From NCBI GenBank assembly GCA_965644315.1, contig CBFFRQ010000068.1:868001-932000 (forward strand): a stretch of 64,000 nt of DNA, written 5' to 3'. The notes under the pieces were generated by a model, which did not search any database, had not been told where the DNA came from, and saw nothing but the letters and a program-made list of their open reading frames with translations. Source of the stretch: Caecitellus pseudoparvulus (lineage: Eukaryota > Protista > Bigyra: Bicosoecida). Shown here in pieces: positions 1 through 39,134 of this stretch (position 1 is its first letter; each line of letters begins with the position of its first letter). The translations under genes were made by a program, and so were the position numbers.

Positions 1-3000
1 ACAGCGCAGGATAGCTCCTCGTCCGTGATCTCCCCCACACGCAGCACCGAGACAGACGGGGGTCTGTATGAAGACGGCAACAGGCGCGGTGGGCTTGAGA
101 TGCCGCCAACACTGACTGCGAAGGTGTGGTCTCGGCCTACGCCAGGCACAGTAACACACTGCAGCTTCGTGTGGGGAACAGTAATGCTACAAGACACCGC
201 AGTGTACAGTGGGGTGTTCCCGGGGATAATGTACGTGACGGTAGGTGCGCCGTCTGCGTCGCTAACCACACCCGGCCCGAAGTTCGTGCCTGTCAAGACA
301 AGGGCATCTCCTCCCGGTGTCTCAGCATTTGTGAAGGACGCGTCGGCAAGTGTGAGGATGGCGGGTGCAGCATGCGAGACCAAGTGCGGAGCAGCCGTCG
401 TGAAGTCGGCCGGTTCGGCGAAGTCAGGCAAGCCTGCCGGGGACGTGAAGCGCACCCGCACAGCAAGGTCCGCGCCAACGCCCTCAACAGTGCTGCAGTT
501 CATGACTGTGTTGCCCAAGTCGCTCGCGTCCTCCAGCACTGCGCAATCCGTCGCGGTGTACTTGGAGCCGTCAGCGCCACCATACGTCACCATGGGGACT
601 GCACGAGGCGCTGACGGGTTTTGCTGGTGGAAGGACTTGGTGAAGCCGAAGTTCCTGCCAGTCAGGAGCAGAGTGCTGCCTCCGGCGGTGGGCAAGGCGT
701 TCGCCGGACCAGGCGCCGCGGCGCCATCTTGCACCTGCACTCGTGTGACTGTGACATCGTTGATGTCTGTCAAGTTGACCCGTACGTCGCAGAAAGCCTG
801 CAGGTTGGTCGGGTCGCGCACAAGAACGCTCGCTGTCAATCGCTGGGCATGTTCAAAGTCTGCGCTGGAGAAGGCCAGCACGACGAGGTTGAACCGTTCG
901 AGGACAGCGTCGTACTTCACGCCGAAGATGTCTCGCCCAGAGCTGTCCTTCGTGTTAGCCACGGCCACCAAGGAAAGCTCGCCAATGGTCCGGTTCACTT
1001 GGGTGAGGTCCTCGTCCGACACGCTGAGAGCGCCGACCAGCAGCTCCGTCGTTTCGACGCGCTCCGGAATGGAGAACGGCTGCAGTCCACAGACAGGCGC
1101 CTCGTCCACGTCTTGCACATCGACCTGAATCGTCCCTGCCGAGGACAAGCCGCCATCAGAAGCTGTCACGCTCAGCGTGAAGGTTGGGGAGGGCCCTTCG
1201 AAGTTCAAAGCGTTCGGCGCGGCATCTGCGCGCAGCTTCACAAGGTAGTGTGTGAGGGTCCCGCCTCCTGCCAAGGCAGATGCTGCATCGGGAAATGATG
1301 TCGCAGGAGCGACGGAGGTGCCGATGACTTCCAGCTCGAAGACATCGCTCTCTGGCGCAGCGAGCGTGAGGCTCAGGGGCAGCCCATCCTCGTCGGGATC
1401 ACGCCACGTCAGGTTTGCCAGTACAGAGCCTGGAGGCGTGTTCTCGTCAGGGGTGAGGGAGGCTTGCAGGCCGGCGTCCGGCACCTCTGGCATATTTGCC
1501 ACATCCACTTCTACCGTGTTGACGACAGTGACGGAGTCCTCTGCATCTGGGGGATGGTCTGTGATGAACACGTCGAGTATCACCTGAGGGGTGAGCTCGA
1601 AGTTAAGCATGGACGAGTTCACTTGCAGCTGCCCAGACTGTGGAGCCACGTCTTGGACATCTAGGAGGCGCCCACCACGGGGAGTCACATCCCGAACGCG
1701 GAAGGTGACATCATCACCGTCCGCGTCGGTGGCGACTAGGAGTGGAGAAATGGCCGCGCCAAGCAAAGAGTTTTCATCCACGGATCGGGCCACACCAGCA
1801 TTCGAAAGCACAGGTGGGCGGTTTTGGTTTGAAATGGTGACGTTGACTTGCGCGGAAATGGTGAGACCTTCACCATCGGCAACCTCCACGACTAGCGTGT
1901 GCACCTCAGACGAGGAGAGGTCTGCAAGGTCATTCACGACAACCACTTGTCCAGTAGCATCAACAGACAAGTTTGCGCTCGTGGAGCTGATCAAAGTAAA
2001 GGTAAGCGTATCTCCCGCGTCTTCATCAACAGCTGCCAGCGGGTCGCCCACTCCGACACCCGCGGTCGTCAGCTCTGCAACTGTGCGCTGGAACGTCTCA
2101 GACGGGTCCCATGTCGGGTTGTCATTTTCATCGGCAAGTTCCACGAGGATCCATACAGACCGGGTTTGGTTGCTGCCAGTGGGGTCTGTTGCAGCAGCTT
2201 CCACCCACACGAGTGGCTCCGATACGGGCTGGCCTTCGTAATTCAAGGCAGCAGTATCCAGGATCTCCAGCGACCACTCACGCACGGTGACATTGAAATA
2301 CTCCTCTACCAACACCCCCTGGCCAATGATGGTTGAGTTTGAGTTGACATCAAACGTAACGTTTTGCTGCACGTACGACGCGTTGACCGTCTCCACGAAA
2401 GAGCTTGGCAATGTCAAGCCCACTGCGCTTACGCCGCGCACGATGCCGTCGTTCGCATTGGTCGCAGGCAGGGAGAGTTGAACCGCGTCACCTTCATCGT
2501 CTGTCGCCTGTAGATACCCGAACACAGTTCCAGCTGGTGTGTGCTCACTAAGAACGACTCGGTTGCAAGCAAACTGCTTGCTGCCGCCGTACACCTCACC
2601 ATTTTGTGCTGCAGTGTACACCGGCTTGTTGTAGGTGGACCTAGTGTCAAAGTAGCACCTTCTCGCGTACGGCGAGGAGCCGCTGTTGTGCGTGGACGCA
2701 TAGTACACAAACCCTCTGCATGTCTGGGAGGCAGCGCAGTCAGCCTGGCATTGTGCTGCGTTTGCACGGTCTGACGGGAAGGGTGAGCCAAAGCGCACAT
2801 CCAGCTCTGATTCAACGCCGGGGGTCGGGAAGCTAACATCAGCGGTGCCAGACAGAGAAAAACCACCACTTGGCTCGTATCCCCAACCTGCATGCATGGC
2901 CCACGGGGTGTCCCAAGCCGTGAAGGAGGAAGAGTTGCATCTGAACAACGGCCTGTCATTGCGGTCTGTGATGTTAACCTGTACGTTCATGGTATCTTGC

Positions 3001-6000
3001 AGCGGCTCAGTGTCATCGCCATCGCGAATGCGAAGCACGAGGTCAAACTGCTGCGTGGACTCAAAGTCGATGACGTCGTTTGCGACAGCGAGCTCTGCGG
3101 TGGTCTTGATGGAAGGGATCGTGGAGTTGGCATCGTCAGGATCAGGCACAAGGATGGTTTCCTCCTTTGCTTCGATTTTGAAGGGGGCACCCAGAGCAGC
3201 GCTGCTGCCACCAGCACCAGCCAAAGCTGCGTACTGCGCAGTCGGTCCCGCCACAGAGCCAGGCGACACGCGGTTTTGGTTTCCGGAGACAATGATGACT
3301 TCAATACCTTGCTCGTCCAATGGCAGGGCGGCAACGTCTTGATCGGTGAAATCGATGGCCGTGATGACGGTGTCAGGTGGCGTGTTCTCCTGGATAGAGA
3401 AGGTGTAGGGAGGGTTGTCGTCAAGCCACTCTGGTGCCTCATTCACGTTCTGCAATCGGACGGTGACGTTCACAACTGTGACTCCGATGGGGAAGCCGTT
3501 TCCTCGCCCTCCATCATCAGTCACTTGCACTTCCAGCAGGAAGCTGGTGTCCTCTTCATAATCGAAAGCTTCATCGCCGGCACTCGACACGGTGATGGCA
3601 CCGGTGGCTGAGGCCATGTCCAGCCATGCAAGGTACTTTGCAGGATATGTTGCCAACGCGGCGTACGTCAGCGTATCGCCGTCTTCGTCTGTTACAGCTA
3701 GAGTGCCAACCGCCGAGCCTTGGGCAGAGTTCTCGATGACAGTCAGGCTTTGCGAAGCCGACACGCTGGGAGGGTCATTGGCATCGAGGACGTGGATGTT
3801 GACGAGGGCTGTCGCCTGGAACTCAGTGTCGTTGACCATGGCCAGGAGCGAGAAAGAGTTCAGGGCCGGGTTTTCGAAGTCGAGGAGGTTGGGCTTCGTC
3901 GTCACCAGCTGTGCTGTTGATCGCGTCCCCACGGTGGGAAGGGACTGCACGTCAAACTGATCAACAGCGTCGGTGATGATGACGGACCATGCCAGGTCGT
4001 CACCGTCTTGGTCTGTGCCATTCAGTGGCCAAATGGCCAAAGGTGCTCCGACTATGCCGTTCTCATACACATATGCATCTTGCGGCGACAGCTCCGGCGG
4101 GTCATTCTTGTTGATGATGTTGATGCGAACAACCCGGGTCACGTTCAGGGGCGGGTAGCCATCATCCAGAGCCATGATTGTGACGTTGTACTCTGCCTGC
4201 TCCTCAAAATCAGGGGGGTTACGCACCCGGAATTGACCAGAGCATGCACCAATGGAGAACGTGTTGTGGTCGTTGCCTGCCACAATGGAAAACAGCACTA
4301 GTTGGCCGTCATCTTCGTCAGAGCCTTCGATAGGAGTGCCCACCTTTGTGTTCACTGGAGCTTCTTCAATGATGGACCGCACTGGGTTGTCCTCCAGAAC
4401 GGGGTGGTCGTTGATGTCCCGCACTTGGAAGTAGGGCAGAGCCAAGGAGCTCAGCCTGCCGTCGCTGACCTCTACCCCTGCGGCCAGGAAAGCCGTGGAC
4501 ACAGACAGGTCATCAGTGCGATTGCGGTAGAGTTCGCGCAGGTACTCGTAGTTCAAGAACGTCGGGTCTGCCACATACACCTCCCCAGTGGAAGCATTGA
4601 CCGCCAGGACGTTTCCGACGTTGCCCGAAATGATCGTGAAAGACAGTCCACAGGTTGCCAGGTCTGGGCAGTCTCCGTCTTGGGCATTCAAATCCGCGAC
4701 CACGGTGCCAAACGGCAAGTTCTCGTCAATCACCGTGAACGGACCGGAAGCACGGGGAGGCTCTTCGATATTCAGCAGCTCCACATTGGCTGTCACGACG
4801 TCCACAGCGGATGCCTGAGATGCCCATGCCTTCATGTGCATGGTTGCCACCACTGCATCGACGCGCTGGTCCCACCCCCAACCATGGTTGATCCAGACGA
4901 CACGCTGGGGTGAATGGCTGGAGCCGATGCGCCTCGATGCCGCCCACATGCGGGTGTGGGTCTCGTTGTAGGCGTACGCAACTCCACCGTAGTTCACATA
5001 ACTGTAGTAGCCACACATCTGGGGTGTCGTTCCTTTCATGTCAAAGCGGAAGCCTTGGCCTGCACCGGTGTTTACCTGCGCAAGCACTTGCACCTGCCCA
5101 GGCAATCGGCCCAAGTCATGCCTCACCTCCGCATGGGCGAGGGAGTGTGAGTGTAAGTCAAATGGCGGGTGCTCGTAGCTCGGTGGGTTTACGTCATCAT
5201 CCGCCCGCCATGCCTGGACACGCAGTGCCACAGTCAGCGTCTCGGATGGCATCGCCTGCCCTCCCCATGCATCCCCAGTGCGCAGAGCGTAGCCAACTCC
5301 TACTCGAGTTGTGGGTAAGTGAGTGCGCACCATGTAGTCGTTGTATGCGTACACGACAGCGCCATGCCGGTACTCCAAGTTGCCGTTGTCGACTTGAGCA
5401 CTGCCGACAGCTTCGAAGACGAAGCCCGCGTTCCACCCGTCAAGGAACTTAGCCAGCACTCGCACGCGCCCAGGAAGCTCGCCAAGGTTGTGCCACACAA
5501 CTTGGTAGGAGCCTCGGTCCTTGTGAGCGTACGCTGTGAACCAGCCTGAGTCGAAATCTGGCGGAATCTCGGGCGCCGCGGTCACTTTGACTTCCACCAT
5601 GTGGGAACGCTGCTCCCACGCTTCCCGCGTGACGACGCCACCTTCATAGATGCCTCCCCAGCCTTGGCCAGTGTTCCAAGCTGAACCAATGCCAGACCGC
5701 TTGTGGACGGTCGGCGCCCACAAGCGGACACCTTCGCGACCCCACCCAAAGTGCACCCCGCCATACCTGAAGAGGTAGTGAGCATCGTGCACAAACACGC
5801 CCGGTGTGCCATGCATGATGAAGCCCTTGTTGGGGCCATCCACTGCCCGCACTTGAACAGTGACGCGCAAGGAGGCGGGGTCTTGGTCAACCAAGTGGGG
5901 GATTTCAGTGAATGAAAGCTGCCCGGCTTGGGAACCAAACTTTACCCACCCACTGTCGTACAAGGCGCGTTCACCCGCGACCTGCACTTGGAAGGTTTGC

Positions 6001-9000
6001 GAAGTTTCAAAGTCCAGGCGCTCAGACTTGTGCACGACGATGCTGCCAGTGGCGCCGTCCACGACAAAGGGTGCATCTGAGGCCGCGTTCACGACGTAGA
6101 AGCCACCCACACGGGCGCCAGGCTCCAAGGCAAGGGGGACGTTCGCTTCAGACAGAGGGGCCGAGTTCTCGGGAAGTGTAACGTTCTGTTCACGGCACGT
6201 GAACAAGGTGGATGTCCGGGCCACCTCGCCTGATGAGGCGCTCTGCACTGAGGAAGTGATGAAGGATGCTGCAGACGTCTCGTTGCTGTCGGGCCGCCGC
6301 TTGCCGATGGCAGACCAGGAAATGGACCCGCCGATCTCCCCGGTTGCGTCCAGATCACCGACTGGTGCCGCAGAGGACTCTAGCGCCCCCAAACCTCTGA
6401 TGCCCACCTTCTGAAGAGCACCTTCCAGAATCGTCGTGTTCACGGGCGACAGCAAGTCCACGCTGACATGGTCATACCAATCGTGGTACGAAAACCAGTT
6501 GTAAATGCCCACTGTCCCGTTCAGAATGGCATCAGAATCCATGTCCCAGTAGTCCACGAAGACTCGGTTCTCGATCTTCACAACGATGTGCCGGCCACGA
6601 ACTGTGACTTGCCATGGGGCCCAGATTCGCAAAGGAGGAAGGCTGATCTCAGCGTCACTCAAATGAACAAGGCAATTCGTCGGATTGCCAGCGACCATTT
6701 TGTAGAAGCACACGTAGCTGCCTCCGCCCAAGTCTAACTGGGCGTAAACGCGGTAGTATGTATCGTTTGACGCAACACGGAACGTGACGCTGCCGTGCCT
6801 CTCATGTGTGTACATCCACGTGTTGAACTGGTAGTCACGCCAGGAGCTCATAGCGACGGGGTCCGCATAGTAGGCATGAACCCCACCCCACCTTTGGGGA
6901 TTTGAGCCTTGAGAAGCGCTGTTTCGACTGCGCTCTGTGGACCAACCAATGCCTGCAACATCTGAGTGCAAAGGAGAGCCCCATGCGCGGCCCACTTGGT
7001 GAAGCCTGCTGTGCTCAATGAAGAACTTGCCTGACACGCTCTCTGTGCGGACGCCTTCGTGGTTCTGCACCCACTTCGCACCCAGCTCAGCCTCCGCCTC
7101 CCTGCAGCACATGACATACGTATCTTGGTACGTGCTGAAGAAAGCGTCATTGTTAGTCTGAGATGGCTCCACATTCTCGAAGAAGTCGCACGCCTCTTGG
7201 TTTGTGTGGCCGCGCCCAATGGCCATCCACGTGTCCCGGCCTGCCAGAGCCAAGTATGCTCGCCCATCCCGAGACTTGCCGTTGAATCGCAGCCAGCCGT
7301 AGGGGTGTCCGCTGTACCATTTTCCCGTGCACACCTCCTCGGCAGGGCACAGCTGGGCCTTCTGCTGCGCACAAGTCTCACGAGCCATGTCCCATGTGGA
7401 GAAGGGGTGGTGCTGAAAGTAACCAAGCCCAGGCGCTGCGATCACGGTCCGGCGAAGCGTGTCATGGTAGTAGCGTGTGACGAAGTTCTCCAAGTACACC
7501 TGCTGTCGCAAGGGTCTCATGTTCTGGGCAGCGATCATGACAGTCTCGCCTTCAGCAACAGAGTCGATGAACGCCGCGAATGTCTCCGCATGTCCAGGGC
7601 CGCTCATGGGGAACTGCTGCACTGACGACACCACGGCATTCTCCTGGTCAACAACTGCCACTTTCAGTCCAGAGAATGTTGGGTCATACACCCCTGACGG
7701 CTCCAAGGCTTGGCCATTGACCAACAGCTTCGCATAAGTGGACGCGATGCTCTGGACAAACACACGCCTGACGCGAATGGCATCCGTGTTACCAGCATCT
7801 GCATGACCGCCAAACCTGAACCGAACATACCGGGCTAGAACTGGGGTAAGTTCGGTTGCAAACAACTCCTCACGGACAATGTCAGAGCCATCGGCAGCTG
7901 CCAGAGTCGCAAACGGCGTCCAAGGCCCAGATGATCCCAGGCTATGTTCAACCTCCAATGTCTCGCCAGGCAAGGCAACAGCCAAGTCAAACCTGGCCCC
8001 CACTTGTGTGAACGACTGCGGTGACCCCAAGTCGATTACTAAGGACTGCTCAGATTGCCCCGTGCCAGGCGAAAAGGTCCACCCAGCCAGATCATCGGGG
8101 GGCTGGACAAAGCCAAGCAGGTGCCCTTCTGCAGCTCCCGGCGTAGGCGACGAATCAGAAGCTTGGAAGCTGGAGGAGGCACTGACCGAGGCAAGCATGC
8201 TGATTTGGTTGATGCTCTGTTCCTGGGGCATGGGGAACTCCACCACGTAGCCTCGCACTGAGTTTGGACAAGAGTTCTGGCAGCGCCCCATCCTGCCCAG
8301 CCGCGTGGAGCCAGAAGCGTCACACGCATCAGGGTGCAGCTGGAGGTACCCAGTCGTGCCCGTTGGGCTGGGATCTGAGGCCCAGTTGAGGAAGGTAACC
8401 TGCTCAACCAGTTTCGCATCCCCATCAGTTGTCTGCCACTCACCAGCGCCGGCATTCCAGCGCCCGGAGATCCAAGCCCGTTCACAGCCTGTCAAGATGT
8501 TGACGCAAGCGAGTTCATCTGCGTCAGAAATGACACTGAGGCGGCCTTGCGCTCCGTTGAACACCTTCTTGCGAGCTTCGATGCTGGCTCGCTCATACGT
8601 GATCTCCGGGGAGTACACGAACTGATACATCTTGCCAGAAGCGGGGCAGAAACGTGGAGTCCGCACATCTTCTCGACTCTCAACGACCTTGATGTCAGAC
8701 ACCGTAAACGCTGCTGTGTGCCCGGTATTTGCCATGGCTCGGAACACCAGTGGCTTGTCGTGGTGTTGCAGCTCTTGGGTCTCAAGCACCTCGTTGTCGG
8801 GGATGATTCGCGAGCGGTTGAGCATAAGCACGTTGTTCTCATACACCTGCACCTGGTCCTCAGTCACAAAGCATTGCACCTGTGCAGAATGACCCGCAGA
8901 AGTCATGACAGACTCAGCAACCACGGTGCTTTCGGAAGACGCCAATGCCTGCACTTGAGCCAAGGTCAGGGGCACTGGGTACGCCTGGAAGTTCCGAATG

Positions 9001-12000
9001 GAGTTGTGCTGTGAGTTGCTTTGGCAGCGCCCAAACCCGAAGGTTCGGGGGCCTGCGTTCACAATGTTCGGGTGGAACATGTCGCGGCCGCTCAAGCTGG
9101 TAGCACACACGCTGCGGCCGTTATAGTAGACCTGCAACAAGCCGGGGCGCAGGACGATGGTAATGTGGGTCCAAACTCCCAGTTCCAGCTCTTCTGCGGG
9201 ATCGCAGCCATTGTTCCAGTGCAGTTCTTCAGCCTTGCGAACGTGCACGTTGGATCGATACGGCCTCACCCAGACTGCGGGCTGGCGATCGCGCCCACCC
9301 GAAACCTCCCCTAGGTCTGTCTCAGTATAGCTTGCCGAGCAGCCCCGGAAGAAAATGCCACCCCAGTACCACGTTGTCTCGGTAATTTTGAACCAGAACG
9401 CGTATGACATGCCACCCGTGTGCCAGTCCTGGACTCGCTGCAGATTCCACGTCCTGTCTGTAGCAAGAGTGAACTCTTTGGAAGGCACCGGGTCATCTGT
9501 TTCATACTCATCGAAGTCTGAGGGAGGGCGCTGCGCGGAGTCGGTTCGGAACAGGTACAGCCACTTGTCCTCATCATTGTTGTACTGCAAGCGGACTTCG
9601 TCGGAGCACATGTGCAGGGAGGGCACAGTCGCCTGTGAGCCGTTCGTAGAAGCGCCCAGCTGAACGGTAAAGCTTGCGTGGTACTCCCGGGCATACTTCT
9701 CTGCGGTTTGTGCAGTGGCTGTGACACGGGCATCGCCAGACATGATGCCTCGCACATCTGGCACGATGTCGATGCCGGCATCCACTGTGCCGGAAAACTG
9801 CAGCTCATTGCTGGAGCCAGTTGCTGCAACTGCCACCTGCAGGCCACCGCTGGGGGCAGCTTGAGTTTCCCACGACGCTTGATTCGGGGAGGAGTCCGAT
9901 GTGACGTCAAGAATGCGAGAAGCGCCACCGCGAGACGTGGCAGTCAGCGACGGGCAGGACCTGGGCTCTTCACCAATGCCGGCGTTCAGGAGCATGACGT
10001 CATCGACGAACACTTCGGCGGACTGCTGAGGAGCAATGGTTGCGAGCACAATGGTGACGCCCGTTGGCAGCCTGGCCCCGAAGCCATACTTCTTCCCGAA
10101 GATGCCCTGCATGGTAAAGGACTTCTTGGACCACTCGTCAACTGGAGAATATGTCAACTCGTCACACAGCCCAAGCTCTTGCGCACCATTCACGCAGATG
10201 CGCACGAACTTGCGGTGAGCAGGGTTCTCAGAGGCCTGGATGTCATCACACCCTTCGTTCATGATGAAGCATGGGTGGTTGGGACGAATGTTGGCGAGGC
10301 CGTCATCCGCAACGAGAATCCAAAGGGGGACGCCCATGTAGAAGGGCTCTCGACGAACGCGCACGGAGAAGGTGAAGAGCGTGGTGCTGTTGATGTTCAG
10401 GCCACTCACCGTGCGCCGGCCGTACGGGAAGCTCGCATCAAGCAGCTCGCCACGCTTCTGGCGCAGCAACGCGGGAAAGGTGGCATCATTAGAGGGAGCA
10501 AGCCAGCCTTGTTCTTCCAGGCTGGAGTCATCACTGGGCAACCGGGCGAGAAAGTTGGCGTTTTGCACCACCCGCTGGTAGCGCAGGGGGTGCTCAGAAA
10601 CACCACTGGCATCGGTCATGTACGCCCCCCACTTGTGCGCAAGGTACAGCTCAACATTCATGCGCTCTGCGTTCGTCAGCACCCTGCGATACATGAGGAT
10701 CTCCCCCACCTGTCCGCTCGTGTAGCCTTGGTCGTAGTAGCCGTACGAGCCCATGCTCAGCACTCCGATGTCACGGTATGCGTTGATGTCTCCGTTGATG
10801 TAGGAGCCCACAGATACCCCACCCACCCACGCACGGTTGAGGTTGGCATCGGCCTCCAGGCATGCGACACCCCAGTAGTACGCATAGTCACGCGAGTCCA
10901 GCGAGTAATCGTTGGTGCGGTGATTTCCGGGCCAACGGTTAAAATTGTACACTCCCCTGTAGTTGCCAGAGTACACCCCGATGATGAAACTATGCAGAGA
11001 GCTCTGAAGAAGCCTGTTAAACGAGCCGCCATCTGGAGTGCGGCTGTCCACGACACACATGGTGAAGGGGCGCAGGGGTTCCACCGACTCACTTTGCCAG
11101 CGCATGCCACCATCGGGTGGGGTGTTGCGCACAGCTGGCATACCGACCTCCGCAGCGTGGGTTGCTGCCTCCCACTGCCAGTTGCCGTTGCTGAACCTGT
11201 CCGGGTCGTGGTCCAACACAAGGGTTGGTCGGGCGGTGCCAGATGAAGAGCCTTGGAAGGCAGCCAGCGACTGCCCGGCCCATGTATCAATGCGGGCACC
11301 GTCAACACTCAGAGGCAAGCCCGCATCTGCCTTCATCCACATCGCTGGCCCTGGTGGGATACCAGGGCAGTGCCTGGTGATTTGCAGGTCAGTCGCGAAC
11401 AGCCGGCCTCGCGTGTGGCCGACACCCTGAAGGGAGAAGGCCAGCGCCCGCACGGGGACAGTCGAGGTCAGGTCCAAGTGGACGTACTGCCAAACGCCTC
11501 GTTGTGAAGGAAGGGATGCCATCCCCATGCTGGACGTGATGACTGTGCCAGATGCGTCCAGGAGCTCCGCCCGCACCACGTCAGTGTTGGAGGCATCCCA
11601 CGCTGTCTCAACGAAGAGGTATGCAGAAACTCGGTAAGTTTCTGACGAGGAGCCGGAAGGCCACAGCGTTTCATTCCACAGCGCGTGGACACGTGGGAGA
11701 AATGTGCGCCTCTCCCACACAGTGTACTGGGCAGTTCCCGAGCTTTGGGTGGCCACTGACCCGAGAGCCAGCACGTGCCCTGTGTTGCCAGGCTCGTTCC
11801 CGCCCAGCCCTGTTGACGCCCATGTCACGATTGCCGCGCGGTTGGCAGGCCCGACACGAGTGGGGGGCATGCCACCGCGGAAAACACCGTTGCCCAGGAA
11901 AGCTGGGCAGCCAGTTAGGGTGGCGGCGTGCTCGTCGATCGTGATACGAACTCCGAATTCACCGCCAGATTTGAAGTCAGGCGCCACATCCCACGTAGAC

Positions 12001-13289: not shown

Positions 13290-13703
13290 GGTACCAGGCT
13301 CGAGGGATCCGTGCAAGCAACAACGAGTGCAACGAGCTGGCAGAAGAGGCTTGAAACGCCGCCTCTTCGCCGGGCTGCCTGCGCAAGCTGAGAGCGCTCT
13401 CGGGCGGCTCAGGCCGTTGGATGCCTTGACAATACAAGCACCTTGATGGACGGCTGATCAGCACCGACCTGGTGCGATTGCATGCAAAGCTACTGTGGAA
13501 CGTGTGAGCTTCTGCACACCACGCACAGCTCCGCCCCCTTCCTCCCCCTGCTACCCCCTTCCCGAAGCGTCCGGTGCGACTCAAAGACCGCCAAACCAAA
13601 TCGTTTTGCCCTAAAGCGTGTCCTAGCGCACTCCATGGCTCCTATAGGCCTCACCTTGCTTCCGGCTGGCACGTGGCGTTCAGGTGCATTTCCGCAGGGA
13701 ACC
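13290..13703. promoter_or_regulatory. Putative bidirectional promoter shared by the two cadherin paralogs
   Basis: 414-bp spacer between two divergent ACC-ATG starts. It contains an 8-bp inverted repeat (13343-13350/13361-13368), a 12-bp palindrome GAGAGCGCTCTC (13390-13401) and a C-rich pyrimidine tract (~13533-13562). Promoter function is inferred from gene geometry only. Confidence 0.55.
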
Positions 13704-19700: not shown

Positions 19701-22700
19701 GGTGGCATCGTGTACAACTACGATGAGAGCGTCGTGCGCGTGTTTGCGCCAGACGCTCGCCACCATGAGTCTCTCAGTCTCGGGGGCCACGCGATTCACA
19801 TCCCAAGCGGGTATCCGTCTGTGAACAGGCAGACATCTCGCTTCGCTTCAGTCAGGGTGCAAGCTTGGACCGGGGAGGTCCGCGAGCGTCCTGACTTTGC
19901 TACAAATGAGCAAGACATGACCTTCGTCCGCCACTCTACCATGTACCACGAACAGCCCGTGACCCTTCTCGGTCATCGACCGCCAGCTCGGTTCACGGCA
20001 ATCGCTTTCATCGACAACTACGGCTCCTCTGTAGGCCGCGCACCGCTTGTTGGCATGCACGGCAACTTGGCACACACCTACTGGAGCGCCTATTCCGGCA
20101 TCGCTTGGGCATACAATCGTCAAGGTGTGCGTGCTTGGGGTCCATCTCCAGATTTGACCAGATCGGAATGGCGCAGTACGAACCACGTGCCCTCCCGCGC
20201 AAGCGATGGGTGGGGCGGTGAAGCAGGGACTTGGTATAAGAGTTACGCGCGCACTCAGTTCACGACGTGGGGCTCACCACAGTCAGTGCAAGATTCGACT
20301 GCAGTGACAGTGCATGTGTCTGACCTGCAGGAGCCACCTGTGACCATCAACACGAAGTTCTCGATCGAGGAGGACGTGTCTGAACGCAATGCTTCGCTGG
20401 GCTATTGCGTTGGCCAGGTAATCGCCGCAGACGACGACGCCGGGGACGTCCTGTCCTTCTCTATCTTGAAAGGCAACACCCGGGGCGCGTGGTCTGTGAA
20501 CTCCACCGCCCACGTCTGCGTCGCTAACCCGTCTGCCATTAACTTTGAGGAGACGCCGTATTTTGTGCTTGCCGTGTCTGTAGATGACGGCATTTTCAGC
20601 AACCTTGCGATCGTGGAAATCGAAGTCTTGAACCGCAATGACCAAGTACATGTGTATCCAAAGAACCTCACAGTGCCTGAGAACGTCCGAGAAAACACAA
20701 TTCTGCTGGCAGCAGACCCAAGCGACCCGAACGAGAATGTGCCCTCATTCGATGAAGACCTTGACCAGGCTATCTTCTACTCCATTGTCGGGGGCAATGA
20801 AGACGGCACGTTCTCCATCAACGCCTGCTCGGGGCAGGTGCGCGTGAATCAGAGTGAAATCAACTTTGAGCGCCAGAACTTCTACAACCTCACCATCCGC
20901 GTGGAAGATGACGGCTCCCCCTTCACATGGGACGAATCTTGGACCACTATCCATGTGACCAACCGCAACGACCCGCCAACGTTGCTGCAGTCCACCGTGG
21001 CAGTGGGTGAGAATGCCCTAGCAGGGGATTTGGTAGGCCTGCTGGATGCTGATGATGAAGACAATGATCCGCTGTTCTTCAACATCCTGCACGGCGATCC
21101 CCTGAACAACTTCACGGTGCAATACCACTCGCCGCACCCTGTTCATGGGCGGCCACGCTATGGCGTGTTCATCTCGAATGACTCCATCAGCTGGGGTGAC
21201 GGCACCGGCCGCGAGGATACAGGTTTCACGTGTCCCAACGGTTGCGTGAATGAGACACGCTTTGCGCTGAGTTTCGAGGCGCCAGAGCTGCCCACCTTGA
21301 GCGGGGCAACGAAGGGCCGCAATCTGCAGATCCGGGTACAGGACCTCGAAACAATCACTGTCAACTTCCCCAACCACGCCACGACACAATTCGTCACCGT
21401 GGCAGTGGAGGACCGAAATGACCCCCCCTTCTTCGACGCCATCACACGCTCAGTCCCGGAAAACTCGCTGACAGGCACTTCGTGCAGCGCCTCCCTCACT
21501 GACTGCTCCAACGACAAACCTTGTGTGCGTGATGAAGATGCTGACGACTCCGGCAGCTTGGCCTTTTCAATGGCTCCTGACTCAGTGGGTCAGGTGCCGT
21601 TCAGTGTTCTGCCGAGCGGGGTGATCCAGGTTGACTTGAGTGTTTCTCCGACCACGTGGCTGGACTACGAGAGCACGAGTGTGTTCACGTTCAACGTCAC
21701 AGTCACGGACGGGGGAGGTCCAGAGGGACCTGGCCAGGCTTACAGCCGCACTGAGTCGGTGAGTGTCGCGTTGACCAATGTGGCCGAGCCACCCGAGGTT
21801 GTGCTCGTCCAGTCGTTTAACGTGAGTGAGTTGGCTTCGCTTGGGACCATCATTGGATACCTGAATGCGACTGATCCAGACGAGGGCGACGAAGTCACAT
21901 ATGACATCCGAACCGGGAACACCCAGGGATGGTTTGATGTTGTGGGTGCAGATGGAGCCATCACGGTTGTCGACACGCTGGATTTCGAGACGGCCCCAGT
22001 GCAGGAACTGTTTGTGTTTGCTACAGACGGGACGTTGGAGACACCCCAAATCAATGTGACGGTGATTCTCATCGATGAGAATGACCCCCCTCTCTTCCAG
22101 TGCACTCTCGAGGATGTCTTTGATTTCACCGTGGAGGAAGACACGAACGCCGTGCTGGGCTACGTGAATGGTGCCAATGAGATTAGCTCCGGATTCGAGT
22201 CTGCTGTCTACGATCTGCGCTCCGGCATCAACGATTTCTCCTTCCAGGATTGCCTTGAATCCTGTGCCTCCACGACGGACTTCACTTGCGTGGCAGCGAC
22301 ATACTTTGCCGGAACGGGCCCGAAGGTGTACCCTCAAGCCTCCTTCCACGGCGACTGCTTCGGGCGAACTGCGTTCCAAAACATCAGGGTGACTGATCCT
22401 GGTGCGCAAGCCGGGGCGACATCCATGTTCCGTGTGTCCGTGTGCGAGGAAGTTGCGGCCCTGCCAGAGAACCCTTTGCCAGGCACCGTTCTTGCCAACA
22501 TCACTGCCTTCGATTTGGACGGTGATCCAGCCGTTCTCTCCATCCCTGCTGCCAATAACCCAGGCTGGGCAGTGCAGCTGAATGGCACGGAAGTCATCGT
22601 GAACAACACAGCACCCTTCAACTTCGAGGAGACGCGCCAGATCTTGGTGCAGGTTGAGGTGTCTGATGGCACTTCCTCGGCCTTCACCTGGGTGCGGGCC

Positions 22701-25700
22701 ACGCTGGTGAACGTGAACGAAGCCCCCGCGTTCGTGGGAGACAACTCAACGTACTCGTTCGCTGTCGCTGAACTTGACCCTGACGGCACGTTTGTGGGGC
22801 GGTTGTCCGCGAACGACCCTGATGCATCCTATTCACTGGACTATTCCATCATTGGCGGCAACGACAAAAACACTTTCCGGGTGGTCCGCGAAGGTGCACT
22901 TGGGGACACGGCCCGCCTGGAGTTGAACCGCACCATCCAAAGCAACGAAGCCGACATTGATGGGGCTGACTACACGCTTGTCCTGGAAGTGTCAGACGGC
23001 GACTTGGCCAATGTGGTGGAGGTGTACGTGAACATCAACGCCACCAACACCGCCCCCATGCTCAGTGGCGTGGCAACTACCCGCACGATCCCCGAACACT
23101 CTGCACCGGGCACTGCCGTTGGTGCGCCCATCACTGTTATTGATAACGAAGGTGACCAAGTCACGTTCACAATCATCAGCACCACCCCCACAATTCCTGG
23201 CGCAGCAGGCCAGCCGGTGTTTGAGTTTGTTGAAGCCTCATCTGGCAGTTGGAACTTGGTCGTCGCACAGGCACCCCCACGAGGGGCTCTGAATTTCGAG
23301 TGCGACCGCACAGATCCTTTGCCAGGCTGTGCTGCAGGCCTCTTCCACACGTACAACGTCTCGTTCACCGTGTCTGACTGGGGCACGGGCAACCGCTCCG
23401 TTGACGCCTCCCTGACAGTGTCCGTCACTGATGTTGATGACACACCAGAAGCGCCGTCTACCATGGTCTTCTCCGTGCCTGAATTGTCCAATCTGGGGCG
23501 GGGACTGACAGACATGAGCGGCTCGCTGTCCAACCCACCTGCAGGCCTGGGTGGCTTGCGGGATGTGTATGACGACGACAAGGTCCCCTTGACCTTTACT
23601 CTCAGCGGGCCTGACTCGGCAGCCTTTGCCGTGGCCGCCGGGAATGGTGACTTGGTGGAGAGCTCTGGGAACATCAGCGACCCGTCCTTCCTGAACCAGT
23701 ACCCGCTTGGACAAACGCCTGACCTGACCGTGGCTGCTGAGCTTGACTTCGAAGTCAAGTCCCTGTACACATTCACCTTGTCAGTGTCAGATGGGGCGAC
23801 CACTTTGAACGTCGCAGTCACAGTGAACGTTACAGACGTGCTGGAAGCACCCGTTGTGGACTCTGGCTTGGCTGACCCCGCGACCTTCCTGGCGACGGTG
23901 CCTGAGAACTCCCCCCAAGGCACCCTGGCAGGCATGATCACAGCAAGCGACCCGGACGGAGACTATCTGTACTACGTCATCACTGGGGTCAGCTTCCTGT
24001 TCCAGGCCGGCTGCCCAGCTGGGTCCGAGTGCCAGGAGGAGGAATCCGCTGGGCAGTTCCTGGAGACTTTCTACACTGAGCCGGTGGCAGTGAATGACAC
24101 ATTTGGGCCGCACGATGCCCAAAACGCCAGTCTCTTCCTCCGCGCGCCCCAACCAGGGGTGGGCACCAGTGTCCTGGACTATGAAAACCGCCTGTTCTAC
24201 CGAGTCAGCATCGAAGTTGCCGACAGGCCTCTAGGCGCTCCCGGGCGCCTCAGCTCCATGGCGTACCTGAACGTCACAGTGTTGGACGTGAACGACATCG
24301 CCATCGACGCTGTGCGCATGACGCGAAGCAATGGCGCCGGCGGGTTTGTTCCAACTGATGGATTGCGAACAGTGGGAGGGCTCGACTTCATCGAAGTGCT
24401 TGGGCGGGGCATTCGGCACGAGAAGCCTGGCCCCGTGCCGCCGGTCATCACCTTGGAGTACGGATGCGAAGATGAAGTTGCTACGATCCCCGCATCCCCT
24501 GGCGACGATGCCTTCACCACCACTTGTGCATACACGGCCACGGGATGTGTCATGGACTCTGTCGTGGACATTCGCTGCGCGGCAGTGCCAGGGTCTGGTG
24601 CCGGCCACCGCATCCGCATCACCGTGGATGGCCAGGTGCGCCACAGCACGCCCTCCATCCACTCGCCCACGACACCCCAGCTCGTGTCCTACCTGCCTCC
24701 CCGAGTCACTGGCGTCTCAGCCCCCTCTCCACTCGCCACAGCTGGGGGGCAGTCCATCGTGGTTACCGGCTCCAACTTTGGGCCATCAGGAACGGAGCCA
24801 GTCTCTGCGACGTATGCCAACGGCATTCTCATGTTCGCCGCCACGTCTTGCTCCGTGGACAGCCACACGCAGATAACTTGCCAGAGCGTGGCTGGCGTGG
24901 GCACTGCCTTCCTCACGGCTGTCTCTGTGGATGGCCAAGCGTCAACCTCCGCCGCGTCGCTGCGAGCAGAGGCGGCAGGGAACCCCACATTCGCTGCGAC
25001 ACTGCAGGCGATGCAGCTGAACTATGCCGCGCCAGTGGTCTCTGGTGTCACTGCGACAAGCCAGCAGCACACCCAGCCAACATCTGGCAGCGGCGCAGTG
25101 CGCAACATGGCGCTGACTGGCACTTCCTTCGGGCCAGGCTCGGCAGCGCTGATCGCAACTGCCATGGACCCAGGAGCTACGTTGCCCCAAGTGCAGGCCT
25201 ACGTCTCCTTTGTGGGAGAGCTCAGAAACGCGAGGTTTTGGCTGCGATCCTCCGATTGCCAGCATGCTTCGGACAACCTAGTCGAGTGCAGCACTCCGCC
25301 TGGGGCGGGCAGCAACTTCACCTGGCGCTTGACGACGGGCGAGCAGACATCTGCGTGGTCCAGCGCATCTCAGCAGACGGGGTACGCTGCGCCTGAAATC
25401 ACCTCAGTCTTCGGCGAGGGTGTTGAAGAGGGGCCCACAGCGGGTGGCTCGCGTGTCTCGGTGCAAGGCGTGAACCTGGGCCCTGCCTTCTTGCTGTCCA
25501 AGCTGGACGAGAGTGGCTCCGAGCTCCCGGCCTTTTCGCCCATCGCAGCGGTGGACTCACTCCTGTACACTTCTCCCTTCTCAGTGCTCCCCAACCACAC
25601 GTACGCAGCCTCTAACTGTGCAGTTCGCACAGCGCATTCCCTGATTGACTGTGTCACGGCTCCGGGCACCGGTGAAGGGCATCGATGGACGCTCACTGTC

Positions 25701-28700
25701 GGGGACCAGGCATCTGCCCAGTTCATTCCCCCTGAGAATACTTCATACGCCAAGCCCTTCATCACGGAGACACTGGGTGCTGCTGGAACCGGTGCCGAGA
25801 CGCGCGGTGGGCAGACTGTCGTGTTGAGGGGGAGCAACTTGGGCCAGTTCCAAGTGGCCATTCAACGCGTGGTGCTGCAGGGCTACGACTACGGTGACAA
25901 GTCTGGGCCACTGAGAGCGTACGATTTCACGGCCAACTGCGTGCTTTCAGTTGCCCACGTGGAGCTGACGTGCACGACGCCAGAAGGTGCCGGTTCCTTC
26001 ATGAGCTTCGACGTCGTCGTGGATGGTCTGCAGTCAGAGCCTGCCTCCACCCGGTACTTGCAGCCCCACCTGGATGCCGTGCAGACTGCTGATCCTGCGG
26101 CAGGGGAAGCGGCTCGCAACGTGACTCCGAGCACCCTGCACACACGTGGTGGGGATGTTTTCTCGGTGCAAGGCTTGAACTTCGCAGAGAACATCACGTA
26201 CGTCACCTCCCTGACCTACTCTGGGTCCTACAGTGTGCCCGCCATCTCAGGCGGAGGCACTCGCCAAGTGCGGAAAGAGGTCGTCGCAAGCTGCAACATG
26301 ACTGCAGCGCACCACGAACTGCAGTGTGTGACACTGCCAGGCGTAGGGGCGGGTCTCCAGGTAAACATGCTCGTGGCGGGACAAGGCAGAGACTCTGAGA
26401 GCATCGACATGCCTCCAGTCTCGTACGCACCCCCTGACATGCTGACCATGCTGCCTTCCTTTGCTGCCAGCCAGGTTTCCTCTCGGATTTTCCGCTTGCC
26501 AGTATCCCTTGGATCTGAGCGAGACACTCTGACTCTGCCCACGAGGATGCAAGACAGTCGTCAGCGCATACGTCTTGTGGGCACGAATTTCGGCACGGCG
26601 GCTGAGGGCCTGACACTTCGTGCTCAGGTCGTTAACTCTGGTCCCGGTGATGCAACCGTTTTGCCGGTGTCTTTCTCTGAAGGGAACTGTTTCGAGTCCT
26701 TCGACCGCTTGTCCGGGACAGGTGGTACGCAGTGGTACAGCAGCGGCTTCCCGCTGGCTGATCTGGAGCAGGCATACGTCACGGCCGTTGGGTCCCCTCT
26801 CGCAGTGGATACAGCAGGCCAGTCGGTGCCGCAGGAGGAGCAGTCCAGGTCGGCTCCCTACTGCATCGACTTCATCCCGCCAGTTGAGAACCATGAATCT
26901 CTGCGACTGACGGTGGAAGTGGGAGAGCAACCATCAGCATCTGAACTTGAGCTATCCTTTGCCCGCCCACACGTCGGCGACGTCATCGTGGCGGTGTCTG
27001 AAGAATCTGAGATCGGACCCATCGTCGCCAACAGGTCTCGATCGGCATCCGGTACGAACGTGGTTCCGGCCCTGAATGTGCAAGAGGAGCTCCAGGGCTG
27101 GCGCATGTTGAAGCTGGAAGGCCTGGACTTCGGCACGAGCGGTGCTGTGGTTGTGCAGTACGTGGACCTGGTCGGCAACGGCACAGGCTCGGCTGATGCT
27201 GAAATCAACAGCACGTTGTACTCGACACATGGCATCTTGACGAAGTACGTGGAAGAAATGCGTGCTGCAGGCCACTGCTGTGCTGCTGCGGCGGCTGATC
27301 TCGTCGCAAGTTGCCTGGAGGAGTGCTTGCGAGTGGACTTGACCAGTGTCCTGGGTGGTGGCTTCTATGACCGCAACTTGGGCGCAGCGCCACGCAGTGT
27401 GCGCAGGGAAACCACTCTGTGCCGCTCTGATGTTGACATCGTCGCAGACTCCATCGTGGACCCAGCTTTCTACTTCAGGCCTGAGCTGCAGTTCCACTAC
27501 CGCCACGACAGTATCCGGTGCCTGCTGCCGCCTGCAGGTGGCCGGGAGATCACCGCTGCGGTGGGTGTGCTTGTGGCTGGAGGGCGGTTCCACGCGCACT
27601 CCAACGTCATGGACTTCTCGCAGCTCAGCCCCCGCATCCTGGAAGTGCGAAGCACGGCGACATTCACAGCAGGGGATGCATACCGCACCACGGGTGGACA
27701 GACCCTGCGATTATTGGTGGAGTATGCCGGCACTGTGGACCGCAACGTCACCCGGATTGAAGTGGGTGAAGAGGGCGTTCCTCCCGGTGAGCAGCGCATG
27801 CCCAACACCTTGTGCCCGATTGACTGGTCAGACTCCCAAGCTTTCCAAGAGCTGGACGACAATGGCGACCCGTGTGGCAGCAATTGCATTCGGTCTCGGG
27901 AGTTGGCTGTGCTGACCTGCTTGATGCCCCCAGGTGAGGGTACACAGGTGCCCATCCGTGTGTTCCGTGGTGACCGCGCTTCAGACAACGCCGAGTTTGT
28001 GACATTCTTGCCGCCCTCTGTGGATTCCATCATCCCATTCGCTGGCAGGCGCTTGCAGGCTGGGCTGCCCGCCTTTGGCACTGAGGGCGGCCAGCTTGCT
28101 TGGCTGCAAGGGTACAACCTGGGCATCTTGGACCGCGCTGTGAACTTCACTTTCGCGTCACCGTCCATGCCACTGGCTGGGTACACCGATACGGCTCCCC
28201 AGACGAACTTGAGCGCGGGGGTGCAGCTTGTGCCGCGCGGGCCTGGCCTGCAACCTTGGGAGCGAGTGCTCATTTCCATTCCAGCCAACGGTGTCGGGCA
28301 AGATCACCACGTGTGTGTGACGGTTGCCGGCCAGGCTGCATGCTCGCCAACAGGCGTCTTTTCGTACGCTGCGCCGGAAGTCACGCGCACCGTGAACTTT
28401 GCCTCCATCAGCACCCGGGGCTCCAATGGCAAGCTTTGGATCATCGGCAGCAACTTTGGGCCTGCCTATATCCCAGGCGTGACTTCGTTTTCCCTGCCTG
28501 GAGTCAACTACGAGCTACACGAGGCGGATTGGAACCACACACACATCGCGTTGACCATCCTTCCCTCCAACGGCGGCCTGCGCATGGACATGTCATTCAC
28601 AGTGGAGGGGCAGACGTGGCGGTCTGCCGATGTGGGGGGCATCCCTCCCAGCGGCCCGCCCGTTGTGGGTGACCTCACCCTCGTCAACTTTGCCCAGCCA

Positions 28701-31700
28701 GCGGTGAACCAGAGCACGACGGACCCCCTTGTGAACATTCCCACACGGGGGGGCATGAATGTGACCATCCGGGGCACGAACTTCGGCTTGGCGCCGTACG
28801 TGGAGCTGGGAGGGGTGCGCACGACACCTGTGGAGTCCGATCACGAATTCCTCACGTTTGTCGTGCCCGAGTCTGTTGGCTCTTACGATGTGGTTGTGTT
28901 CGCAAACAACCAGCCCATCAGCACCCCGTTGCGCCTGGAGTACGCCGCTCCCTCGCTGTCCTCCATCAGGGTGCTGCGAGGTTGCCAGCAGCGCTGTGGC
29001 GACATTGTCATCGGCGGGCAGGAGAGCGCGGGCCTGTACACGACGCCTTGCGAAGAGGACAGCGTCTTTGGCGGCACGGCAAACGTCGAACCGTACAGCG
29101 TGTGGACCAACCGTGTCACTGCGGATACTCCTGAGTGGGACAGAGTGCGCCGCTGTGCACAGCCAGACCGAGTGGAGTTGCGGGGCGCGAACTTCGGCTC
29201 CCCCACTGATGGAGCACACGTTGTCTTCAATGGCCAGCGCATCACTGCTCGTTGCGACAGCATCGACACGCCTGGCTCGCGGTTCAAGCCCCTGGTTCCC
29301 TGCCTCATGGACGTGCTGCCGTCCGAGGAGCACGACCTCGTGAAGATCCGCGCGCCTCCAGGGCAGGGGGCAGGCCACTCCATCCATGTGTCCTTGCCTG
29401 AAAAGGTGAACGGCGCCGCGACGTCCAGCTCCCTGGACACGCCAGCGCAGGCCATCGACTACCTGGCACCTGAGATCACCAACCAGCACCCACGCCCTTT
29501 CCGGGCTGTGGGGGACACCCTGTACTTCTTCGGGCACGGGCTGGGCCACAACTCAAGCGCCTTCCCGCTGTGCACCGACCCGGCATTCGGGCTGGAGCCC
29601 TTCCAGGATCATGACGTCATGCACGTCAGCCTGAGCGGTACCTTCAACTGCACGTCGCTGTGCTGGTCCTCTACGCTCTCTCCGTCAGCGTACCAGTTGA
29701 CTGAGCCGGGGGTGCCTGAGAACGGCCTCCCCTTCCTCAAGTGCGAGATGGGCCAAGTGCCCCGTGGGCCGCACACTGTGGAGGTGACGGTGGCCGGGCA
29801 GACGGGTGCCCGAGTAAACCTGCCTGACACGTCCACATCCATCCGCTCTGTCTGCGACAAGGCGTGGTGGGGCATGGACGGTGAGTACTGCTTGACTTGC
29901 CCTGAGGGTGCAGTGTGTGAAAACTGCCCCGCTGACAGCTGGGAACACCTCAACTGCCCGGATGGGTACCGTTCAGAAGACCCAGAGTGCCTTGTTGGCG
30001 CGGCCCAGCAGGGGCCGCAGTGTACGGAGCCGACCACTGAGGGCGGGGAGCCTGTGTCAGTGAAGGGCTTCTGGGTTGTGCAGATCCAGAACACGACTAA
30101 GGAGTTCAATGACGATGAAGTGTGCCCGCCTGAACGCCGAGGGCGCGAGGAATGCCCGCTGCCTGTCGGCTGCCTGCCAAGCTTCGCGTGTGTCGGCAAC
30201 AACGAGTGTGCTTTTGGCTACATCGAAGAAAGGTGCTCCAAGTGCCGGCCGAAGAGTCACTTCCGCATCGCAGGCGTGTGCAAGAAGTGCCCTGACAACC
30301 CGTGGATGCCCATCGTCGGCTTCGTGGCTGTCATCATTGTCATGTGTGGCGGTTCGTGGTACGTGAACAAGAAGAACCTCTCCTTGGGCATGGTTGCCAT
30401 CGGCATCGACTACTTCCAGGTGCTGGCAATTTTCGCCCAGTCCAACGTCAAGTGGCCGGACATCCTTATCGAGTTCTTCAACATCTTCTCGTACATCAAC
30501 TTCAACATCGACGTGGCTGCCCCTGAGTGCCTGACCCCCAACCTGGACTTCAGGCTTAAGTGGTACATGCAGCTGGGACTGCCCATCGGAGTTGCTGCCA
30601 TGTTGGCGCTGTCCTTTGTTGTCGTGTACGTGTGGAAGAAGTTCATCAATGGGCAGTCTGGTGCGGTACTGACGGCTCACTTGAGCCCGTCAATCACCGC
30701 CCTCGTGACGGCCATGTACGTGCTGTACCTGCTGCTCTGCCGGCGTGTGTTCGACGTGTTCAACTGCAACCCGACCGTGCCTCCCGACCCGCGCGGAACG
30801 CTGTACATGGAAGCCACCAACTCCCCCTGCTGGGAGCCTGGGAGTCTGCACATGCAAGTGCTGCCCTTCGCAATCTTTGGCCTTTGCTTCTACGTGATCG
30901 GGTACCCTGTTTTCGTCGGCTACTTCCTGTTCAAGTTCCGCGAAACCATCAAGGAAGACCAGCACCTGCGAGCCATCGGGGCGAACTACGTCGCGTCTGC
31001 AACAACAGGTAACGCTGGGGCGACCTTCCGTGCTCGGTACTCGAAGCTGTACTACTACTTCAAGCCGTCCCACTACTGGTTCATTCTGACGGTGCTGGGC
31101 AGGAAGGTGTTCCTTGCCATGACATCCCTCATGTTCCGATCCAACCCCGGCTTCCAGCTTGCAGTGGCGCTGCTCATTGTGTTCTTCTCGTTCACAGCCA
31201 GCGTCATCGTGCAGCCATACCTATGTGCTGCCACGGCAGAGGAGGTTATGGAGAAGCATGACAAGATGGTGAACCTGGGCAGTCGACTGCACCAGAAGAT
31301 CGACGTGGAGCTGCGACGGGCTCGAGCCCAGCAGGCAGCAGACCTGCGCAAGCAGAAGTCTGCTGGCTGGAGCAAGGCGAACGAGTCCTTGGCCAGCAAG
31401 GATGGCCAGTCGAAGGACTCGGGGCAGTCTGAGCAGGTGGCTGACACGCGCCACCTGCCCCAGAACCGGGCTGCCAACGGTGACACCCGCATGGCCGGCA
31501 GCATCCTGGTGAACTACAACTTCGTGGACCAGCTGCTGCTGGCGAACACCGTGCTGGTGTGCCTCATCGGGCTCATGTTTGAGAGCAACCAGTTCAGCAC
31601 GGACAACGCGGCCAACGATGCCGCGACGGGGTCCCTGACGGGCGTTGCCATCTTCCTCATCATGTCTGGCACCATCTTCTACATCACGTGCTTCACCATC

Positions 31701-32201
31701 GACATGTACGCCAACCTGGGCAAGCGCGGGTGCTGCACCACCCTGGAGGCTGAGAAGCGCCAGCACGGCTCGCTGCGCAAGGCCTTGATCAAGCGCCTCG
31801 TCACCAACGCCCGGAAGAAGAAGGCTGCAGGGAAGAAGGGCAAGAAGCCAGGCAAAGACTCCGGCATGGACGCCCTGATCGACGCCCGCAACGCGAAGGG
31901 TGGGGAGGAGGAGAAGGACACGGGCATGCAGATGAACCCCATGCTGATGAAGGCGGGTCACTCCGCGAACAAGGCAGCATCGGCTGTCGCTTCTCTCTCC
32001 CAGGAGCAACTGAAGGCCTCCAACGTCCCAGCCGAGGTGCCCGCGGATGCCGTGTACAGGGCGTACCTTGCGCGGTACTTGGCAATGGAGAAGGACATCG
32101 CGGTGCTGGCGGAGGAATTTGGCGACAAGAAATCAGGCGGCGGCGGCGGTGCCGCAGGCGCGGCTGGTGATGGTAAGGCCGCCGCCGGAGCAGGAGTGTG
32201 A
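13704..32201 (+). CDS. Giant multi-pass cadherin (Nonagonal-like), paralog B, ~6,093 aa. join(13704..13872,13943..14014,14161..32201)
   Basis: Signal peptide MRLAPRLFLLLCGAVSLLSSQA. Introns GTAAGT..CGCAG (70 nt) and GTGCGT..CACAG (146 nt) restore FTIEGWYFF and QYISLGFN in frame with the 6,056-aa ORF. Domains: about 3 LamG-like, CGDG..CDDGN repeat (~14675), lectin-like (~17450-17780), ConA-like (~17800-18430), 11 cadherin repeats (~18780-24300), IPT/TIG array (~24300-29830), Cys-rich neck (~29850-30300), about 9 hydrophobic helices (~30300-31710) and a cytosolic tail. Confidence 0.93.
19061..20270 (+). repeat. Three tandem ~125-150-aa protein repeats inserted in cadherin repeat 1 of paralog B
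   Basis: Units start WDSGWF / PDFDSSWF / PDFATN and share V.V...DGxNxGF.F, (Y/W)GG..YxY, VR(L/V/A)(W/F)(A/G)P and a final V.V.xW strand. Confidence 0.8.
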
Positions 32202-38963: not shown

Positions 38964-39134
38964 CTGCTGTCACTTCAGCCGCATCGAAGACAGAAGCTGG
39001 TGCGAGACACATCCCAGCATCTCCAGCCCTTGGAGTGCCTGTATCACGGTCGGTGCGATGCATCAATTTTGGTAACGAGGCATCCGTGTGCCACCCCAAA
39101 GCCTTCAGGCTGTGCAGTGTTCCAATTTCCGCAC

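Follow-up and report, generated by a model that had tools for sequence, protein, structure and literature searches.

Two giant genes that diverge from a short common spacer raise the question whether they have remained neighbours by descent or are inherited, expressed and used as one unit. This question was addressed for a pair of genes of the bicosoecid Caecitellus pseudoparvulus, here named A (minus strand) and B (plus strand), which meet in the left part of a stretch of 64,000 nucleotides (the window; C68:868001-932000, C68 being contig CBFFRQ010000068.1 of the assembly GCA_965644315.1, which measures 30.6 Mb and has short GT..AG introns). In a first-pass annotation, made from the letters alone, they had been described as head-to-head cadherin-TIG receptors and regarded as a candidate co-regulated adhesion or recognition pair. 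A and B are anciently diverged, collinear paralogues of Nonagonal-type cadherin-TIG receptors, and three head-to-head pairs in the genome together with congruent trees of both genes show that they are co-inherited and duplicated as one block. The whole reading, in which A and B form a two-gene unit that is inherited and copied as a block and has matched expression and a joint function at the cell surface, is given a probability of roughly 55%. To our knowledge, Nonagonal cadherins have barely been investigated and nothing is known on their mechanism. A pair that has kept its head-to-head order over a deep divergence, and whose duplications always involved both genes, is a concrete, testable handle on their function. 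It also matters for the question of how free-living flagellates identify and retain prey, surfaces or one another, and for cadherin adhesion outside animals. In the literature searched, no mention was found of the head-to-head unit or of its duplication as a unit.

Architecture and relationship of the two genes

Gene A encodes 6,634 amino acids (aa) without an internal stop and has one short 5' intron, gene B encodes 6,093 aa in three exons separated by two short 5' introns; each protein starts with a signal-peptide-like N-terminus and closes with a multi-pass domain of nine hydrophobic helices, as judged from hydropathy. B contains a plus-strand open frame of 6,056 codons (14031-32201), and the minus-strand open frame of A runs from 13064 off the left window edge. 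The left end of the stretch described in the first-pass annotation, base 1, falls inside A, near residue 4,405. When 20 kb to the left were fetched from C68, exon 2 was found to continue 6.7 kb past this edge as an open frame of 6,583 codons, and the 3' end of A was recovered at window coordinate -6684. A is complete and membrane-anchored; of the outcomes that would have refuted the first-pass proposal, a lacking membrane anchor and a pseudogene did not apply, as A is intact and carries a nine-helix anchor. Single large exons served as database queries, spliced models for numbering and for local BLAST and HMMER.

Both proteins follow a common plan: behind the signal peptide comes a lectin-type head, then a series of 11 cadherin repeats interrupted at a PAN position, followed by about 14 TIG domains, by a Cys-rich stalk and finally by the nine transmembrane helices. 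Along this plan they are collinear in four BLASTP blocks with 25-32% identity, namely A151-397 with B90-323, A623-1078 with B366-763, A1941-4906 with B1179-4225 (25.5% identity, E 1e-156) and A5741-6536 with B5105-6063 (27% identity, E 1e-96). The divergent pair with signal peptides and collinear module order that had been proposed from the letters is borne out by the gene models, by BLASTP and by a repeat map from a home-made iterative hidden Markov model (HMM), and the four short anchors FTIE.W, GVPLWI, FVD[DE]V and TFSI.ACSGQ all stand at matching positions. Equal cadherin counts were likewise recovered, 11 repeats (EC) each being found in A, in B and in the orthologues of both, in a shared layout in which a partial EC1 and an insert of 350-400 aa precede two blocks of five ECs, separated by ~100 aa at the PAN position; TIG domains amount to 14 in A and 13 in B.

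Pfam recognised Laminin_G_3, DUF4215 (the Cys repeat), DUF7495, Cadherin and TIG in both proteins, the Cadherin score reaching 172 bits in B and 66-69 bits in A at a cut-off of 28.8. Of the remaining modules, PAN_1 scored in A only, with a size-matched gap between EC6 and EC7 in B, and a match to a ConA fold of the 3-keto-disaccharide-hydrolase-like kind was obtained in B only. Extra domains of A are a second Laminin_G_3, F5/8 type C (discoidin) and ILEI. A fold model of B 360-1180 reached medium confidence; where it is confident, it corresponds to lectin jelly rolls of the ConA/LamG type. Matches of the B head to the clostridial neurotoxin binding domain and to a trypanosome sialidase lectin were rejected, as they reflect the common ConA-like jelly roll only and no relatedness to toxins.

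With regard to the origin of the pair, DUF7495, an N-terminus of LamG plus DUF4215, and the split-EC1 region are common only to A and B types, and in a genome search the head of B was matched only by A-type and B-type loci. A common origin of A and B is therefore favoured. The old inverted duplication proposed earlier is plausible on account of these head modules, but the tree of the membrane domain neither shows nor rejects a sister relationship; A-type and B-type clades, each strongly supported, are non-adjacent on a weak backbone. In the alignment, the first introns (phase 0 in A, phase 1 in B) are offset by a single nucleotide around the FTIE codons.

The assignment to the nine-pass kind, also made in the first-pass annotation, agrees with cadherin repeats and nine C-terminal passes in both proteins. 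Nine-pass cadherins of stramenopiles have been termed "Nonagonal cadherins" (Fletcher, van West and Gachon 2016, Gene 593:64, as cited in PMC7409359, PMC8164589 and PMC11603286). A and B resemble them in bearing cadherin repeats on a C-terminal nine-pass domain, in an EC array broken into modules and in having named relatives among stramenopiles (Cafeteria, Triparma); unlike them, they comprise about 6,100-6,600 aa, with about 14 TIG domains and lectin-type heads of 1,600-2,300 aa. No oomycete name occurred among the named matches, and A and B are placed with the Nonagonal cadherins by architecture.

Inheritance and duplication of the pair

Three head-to-head A/B pairs are present in the genome, on C68 and on two further contigs, C20 and C195. 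Similarity between C68 and C20 is confined to -6482..32102 in window coordinates, i.e. to the two genes only (97% and 94.5% identity); it stops within the last codons of each gene and no other gene was carried. The C-terminal tails of these copies are homologous to the stop codon, but more diverged. In the flanks, over more than 28 kb on each side of the C20 block, nothing is shared with C68, even by tblastx, and C20 is thereby ruled out as a haplotig. The pair on C195, a contig of 21 kb, is also arranged head-to-head and is 62% (B'') and 60% (A'') identical in protein, with both genes cut by the contig ends and only the 5' halves present. Trees of the region from DUF7495 to the ECs have the same shape for A and B, ((C68,C20),C195) with the relative branching off next; supports are 96-100, and path lengths in the two trees are comparable (0.70 against 0.61, and 1.26 against 1.31). 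Among the at least 20 family genes matched in the genome, no other head-to-head member was found. The unit of duplication is the pair, not the single gene.

Identity between the C68 and C20 copies forms a mosaic, with 100% over window 7583-12582 and about 90% over 21569-23568, and is read as an older duplication homogenised by gene conversion. The completely identical tract of 5 kb lies in the head of A, where neighbouring parts differ by 2-10%; it suggests recent gene conversion, or an assembly collapse.

Outside the genome, the arrangement recurs on the JGI metagenome contig Ga0307982_1000105, where an A-orthologue (minus strand) lies directly upstream of a B-orthologue (plus strand), head-to-head. 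The former aligns with A residues 13-2950 at 44% identity, the latter with B at 45%. A full-length B-orthologue (P0001) was aligned in one piece over 6,124 columns (47.5% identity), and for two A-orthologues (P0068 and P0188) identity rises from 45% in the head to 64-71% in the membrane domain; the ENA contig of P0188, a full A-orthologue, and that of P0001 both measure 76,430 bp. Alignments of orthologues extend over the whole proteins, with 44-45% identity in heads against 44-52% in stalks, the nine-helix domain being best kept (73-77%). In a word-based search with the head of A, P0188 was the sole match, and two further metagenome loci (L029 and L030) were discarded as relatives since they share generic LamG similarity only. 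The intron at the intron-1 site of A is present in the C195 copy and lacking in the metagenome A-orthologue (locus 8800-8970). As to Cafeteria, it possesses a B-type gene, FNF29_05011, from which it follows that A and B had split before this lineage and Cafeteria diverged. Head-to-head linkage in relatives, as suggested for a check in the first-pass annotation, was thus encountered in the metagenome relative at about 45% protein identity, but no linked A-type gene was found in Cafeteria.

The spacer of 414 bp reported between the divergent starts was confirmed exactly; it measures 414 bp in C20 as well, 433 bp in C195 and 428 bp in the metagenome relative, and this short length suggests a shared bidirectional promoter. 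The one sequence shared by all three A/B spacers of the genome is the 13-mer TGAAACGCCGCCT, which occurs in 16 copies genome-wide, these three included, against none for the reversed control. For this reason it looks like a general motif, and may be a promoter or transcription-factor motif.

Linkage kept in a relative, three copies and congruent trees are what a two-gene functional unit would predict. Several observations weigh against this interpretation. Apart from the 13-mer, spacer sequence is unconserved across the copies of the pair and across species. Elsewhere in the window, divergent open reading frames are commonly separated by tens to hundreds of bp, the genome being compact, so that the 414 bp alone say little. 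The membrane-domain tree does not unite A and B as sisters, although an approximately unbiased test does not reject such a clade (p 0.43). No A-type gene, linked or unlinked, was found in Cafeteria, where the locus read covered only the 3' end of FNF29_05011, and the nearest LamG-bearing relative of A in that genus, FNF29_01879, lies on another contig. The conservation of the pair in the metagenome relative may also not exceed that of other neighbours. Finally, B' on C20 has 14 insertions of one or two bases within 300 bp (window-equivalent 20861-21152) that break the frame, either through an unpolished assembly patch or through a very recent lesion; A', the C20 copy of A, is intact.

Alternatively, A and B might be independent receptors without any functional partnership, left together by an old inverted duplication that went unbroken in a compact, little-rearranged genome and by later duplications that were by chance large enough to include both. 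The lack of conserved spacer sequence, the abundance of short divergent spacers and the missing linked A-type gene in Cafeteria are in line with such neutral linkage, and a tail-to-tail pair of sister genes on another contig (see below) shows that local inverted duplication happens in this family anyway. It is a serious rival, possible though not favoured, as the adjacency of A and B outlasted a divergence to about 45% protein identity and two separate duplications, the C68/C20 block ends at the last codons of both genes with no other gene inside, and both partners are under purifying selection in the two recent copies.

Selection on the copies and possible function of the pair

Both genes are under purifying selection. 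Between the C68 and C20 copies, which are paralogous copies in one genome and not a population sample, the ratio of nonsynonymous to synonymous substitutions (dN/dS) is 0.09 for A and 0.16 for B, and no window of 300 codons lies above 0.37, heads included. These values bear on the earlier proposal of an allorecognition, kin-recognition or mating-type system after the model of Dictyostelium tgrB1/tgrC1, an adjacent, divergent and TIG-rich pair whose Tgr proteins are single-pass and highly polymorphic. A polymorphic heterophilic pair in which variable heads define self could be suspected from the divergent arrangement of two TIG-rich surface proteins and from the multiple copies in the genome. 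Rapid diversification would however be expected, and the proposal is weakened because dN/dS is low, at no point of the heads or elsewhere exceeding 0.4; moreover, heads are no more diverged than stalks between orthologues, and the proteins have nine helices, not one. We consider it improbable. An artefact, in which haplotigs or assembly errors would have multiplied an ordinary single locus, is hardly credible. C195 is indeed short and holds only the two 5' halves, single-base insertions of the kind seen in unpolished sequence form a patch on C20, and 5 kb of C20 are identical to C68; but the flanks of the C20 block are unrelated to C68, protein identity of the C195 copies is no higher than 60-62%, and the pair is confirmed on an independent metagenome contig.

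Taking A and B as a two-gene unit, the short spacer might act as a bidirectional promoter that gives matched expression of the two genes, and their products might cooperate on the cell surface, either by forming a heteromeric receptor or by serving as two complementary arms of a single device for adhesion or recognition. With their 11 cadherin repeats and about 14 TIG domains, the long stalks would extend the lectin-type heads (LamG/ConA-like, discoidin, ILEI, PAN), whose ligands could be glycans or proteins of prey, substrate or other cells; the strongly conserved nine-helix domain with its cytosolic tail could pass a signal inward or drive internalisation. Co-inheritance of A and B is shown, their co-regulation and physical partnership are inferred. 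In its strictest form, A and B would be obligate partners of one heteromeric surface machine, in which two different lectin-tipped cadherin-TIG stalks are paired on a nine-helix membrane domain without solved relative, and by which heterotrophic stramenopiles would link the recognition of particles or cells to signalling or uptake; this version is put forward tentatively and is rather doubtful.

In genomic logic, the closest analogy is found in the collagen IV pairs COL4A1/A2, A3/A4 and A5/A6, which are head-to-head paralogues on a short shared promoter that were duplicated as pairs and whose products assemble together. A and B are likewise head-to-head paralogues with the pair as the unit of duplication; unlike the collagens, they belong to an unrelated family, have an unconserved spacer sequence and are only presumed to assemble. 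With tgrB1/tgrC1 they have in common that the genes are adjacent and divergently transcribed and that the products are TIG-rich surface proteins, but they differ in being nine-pass and cadherin-bearing and in the strong purifying selection between two recent copies. Fat and Dachsous, giant heterophilic cadherins of animals, are single-pass and without TIG array, and their genes are unlinked. Giant cadherin ectodomains are shared with A and B, as might be the use of two different cadherins as partners; nine passes, linked genes and TIG arrays are not.

Nine-helix domain, wider family and feature coordinates

With the last 959 residues of B as query, 2,690 cluster representatives were matched at E<=1e-3, and 444 at E<=1e-30. 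Every full-length relative (3,300-7,800 aa) carries Cadherin and TIG alongside the nine-helix domain, those with names coming from Cafeteria and Triparma, and the Caecitellus genome itself holds at least 20 giant paralogues with this domain. An AlphaFold2 model of B 5430-5945, based on an alignment of 64 sequences, shows nine membrane-length helices with a predicted local distance difference test (pLDDT) of 87 and a predicted template modelling score (pTM) of 0.87. No convincing solved relative of the domain was found with Foldseek (best E 0.33) or VIA-align (Z 8.6 over 113 residues, a generic helical bundle). Abundant in environmental data, of confident fold and with no solved match, the domain is a worthwhile target for structure determination.

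A and B both retain all family-invariant residues of the membrane domain. Among these, polar residues within predicted helices are D5497, Q5500 and N5867 of B (D68, Q71 and N438 of the alignment), and two invariant Cys stand in the loop between helices 4 and 5. Of 104 long family proteins, 38 have the short motif NP[LM][LMF] in the cytosolic tail, where shuffling predicts 0.7. This motif may be an adaptor or endocytic signal; its sites are residues about 6006-6009 in B (window about 31935-31946) and about 6492-6495 in A, outside the window.

Other members of the family attest to further duplications. Two genes on contig C32, 717224-719125 (+) and 740450-742255 (-), are sisters in the membrane-domain tree (support 100) and lie tail-to-tail about 21 kb apart, which is a second local inverted duplication, in opposite orientation. 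Near-identical membrane domains (branch lengths about 0.002) at C65:4074-5402 and C32:809841-811142 are another very recent duplication. The member at C94:54370-55548 belongs to an open frame of 8,657 codons.

Table 1. Parts of genes A and B and of the spacer between them, in window coordinates (negative values lie on C68 to the left of the window).
Feature	Position	Strand	Content or basis
Gene A exon 1	13128..13289	-	Start ATG at 13289 (read from sequence), signal peptide, start of first LamG module, ends on ...DFTIE
Gene A intron 1	13056..13127	-	72 nt, GT..AG, directly after the ...DFTIE codons
Gene A exon 2	13055 to -6684 (C68:861317)	-	In-window part 1..13055 = residues 55 to about 4,405
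Gene A head	13055-6258	-	Pfam and repeat map
Gene A EC1 plus insert	6257-4797	-	Repeat map
Gene A EC2-6	4796-2910	-	Repeat map
Gene A PAN	2909-2616	-	PAN_1 match
Gene A EC7-11	2615-708	-	Repeat map
Gene A TIG array	Starts at 707, continues leftward	-	Repeat map
Spacer	13290..13703	.	414 bp, ATG to ATG; presumed bidirectional promoter plus both 5' untranslated regions
13-mer TGAAACGCCGCCT	13352..13364	+	Within the spacer; also C20:47986-47998 and C195:8987-8999
Gene B exon 1	13704..13872	+	Start ATG at 13704, signal peptide, ...SFTIE+G; intron follows in phase 1
Gene B intron 1	13873-13942	+	Phase 1
Gene B exon 2	13943..14014	+	Read from sequence
Gene B exon 3	14161..32201	+	6,012 codons plus stop
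Gene B head	To 18740	+	Pfam and repeat map
Gene B EC1 plus insert	18741-20291	+	Repeat map
Gene B EC2-6	20292-22130	+	Repeat map
Gene B PAN-position gap	22131-22400	+	Repeat map
Gene B EC7-11	22401-24341	+	Repeat map
Gene B TIG array	24342-29855	+	Repeat map
Gene B Cys-rich stalk	29856-30299	+	Between TIG array and membrane domain
Gene B nine-transmembrane domain	30300..31709 (residues 5461-5930)	+	Hydropathy, AlphaFold2 model
Gene B cytosolic tail	31710-32198	+	After the membrane domain

To the right of gene B, two long open reading frames (39000-40850 and 41465-44284) are without a Pfam match, and the neighbours in window 33101-63919, of ordinary appearance, include a NUDIX hydrolase, a WD40 protein, a WASH-like protein (WAHD plus WH2), a protein kinase and DENN-domain, ankyrin and RCC1-FYVE proteins.

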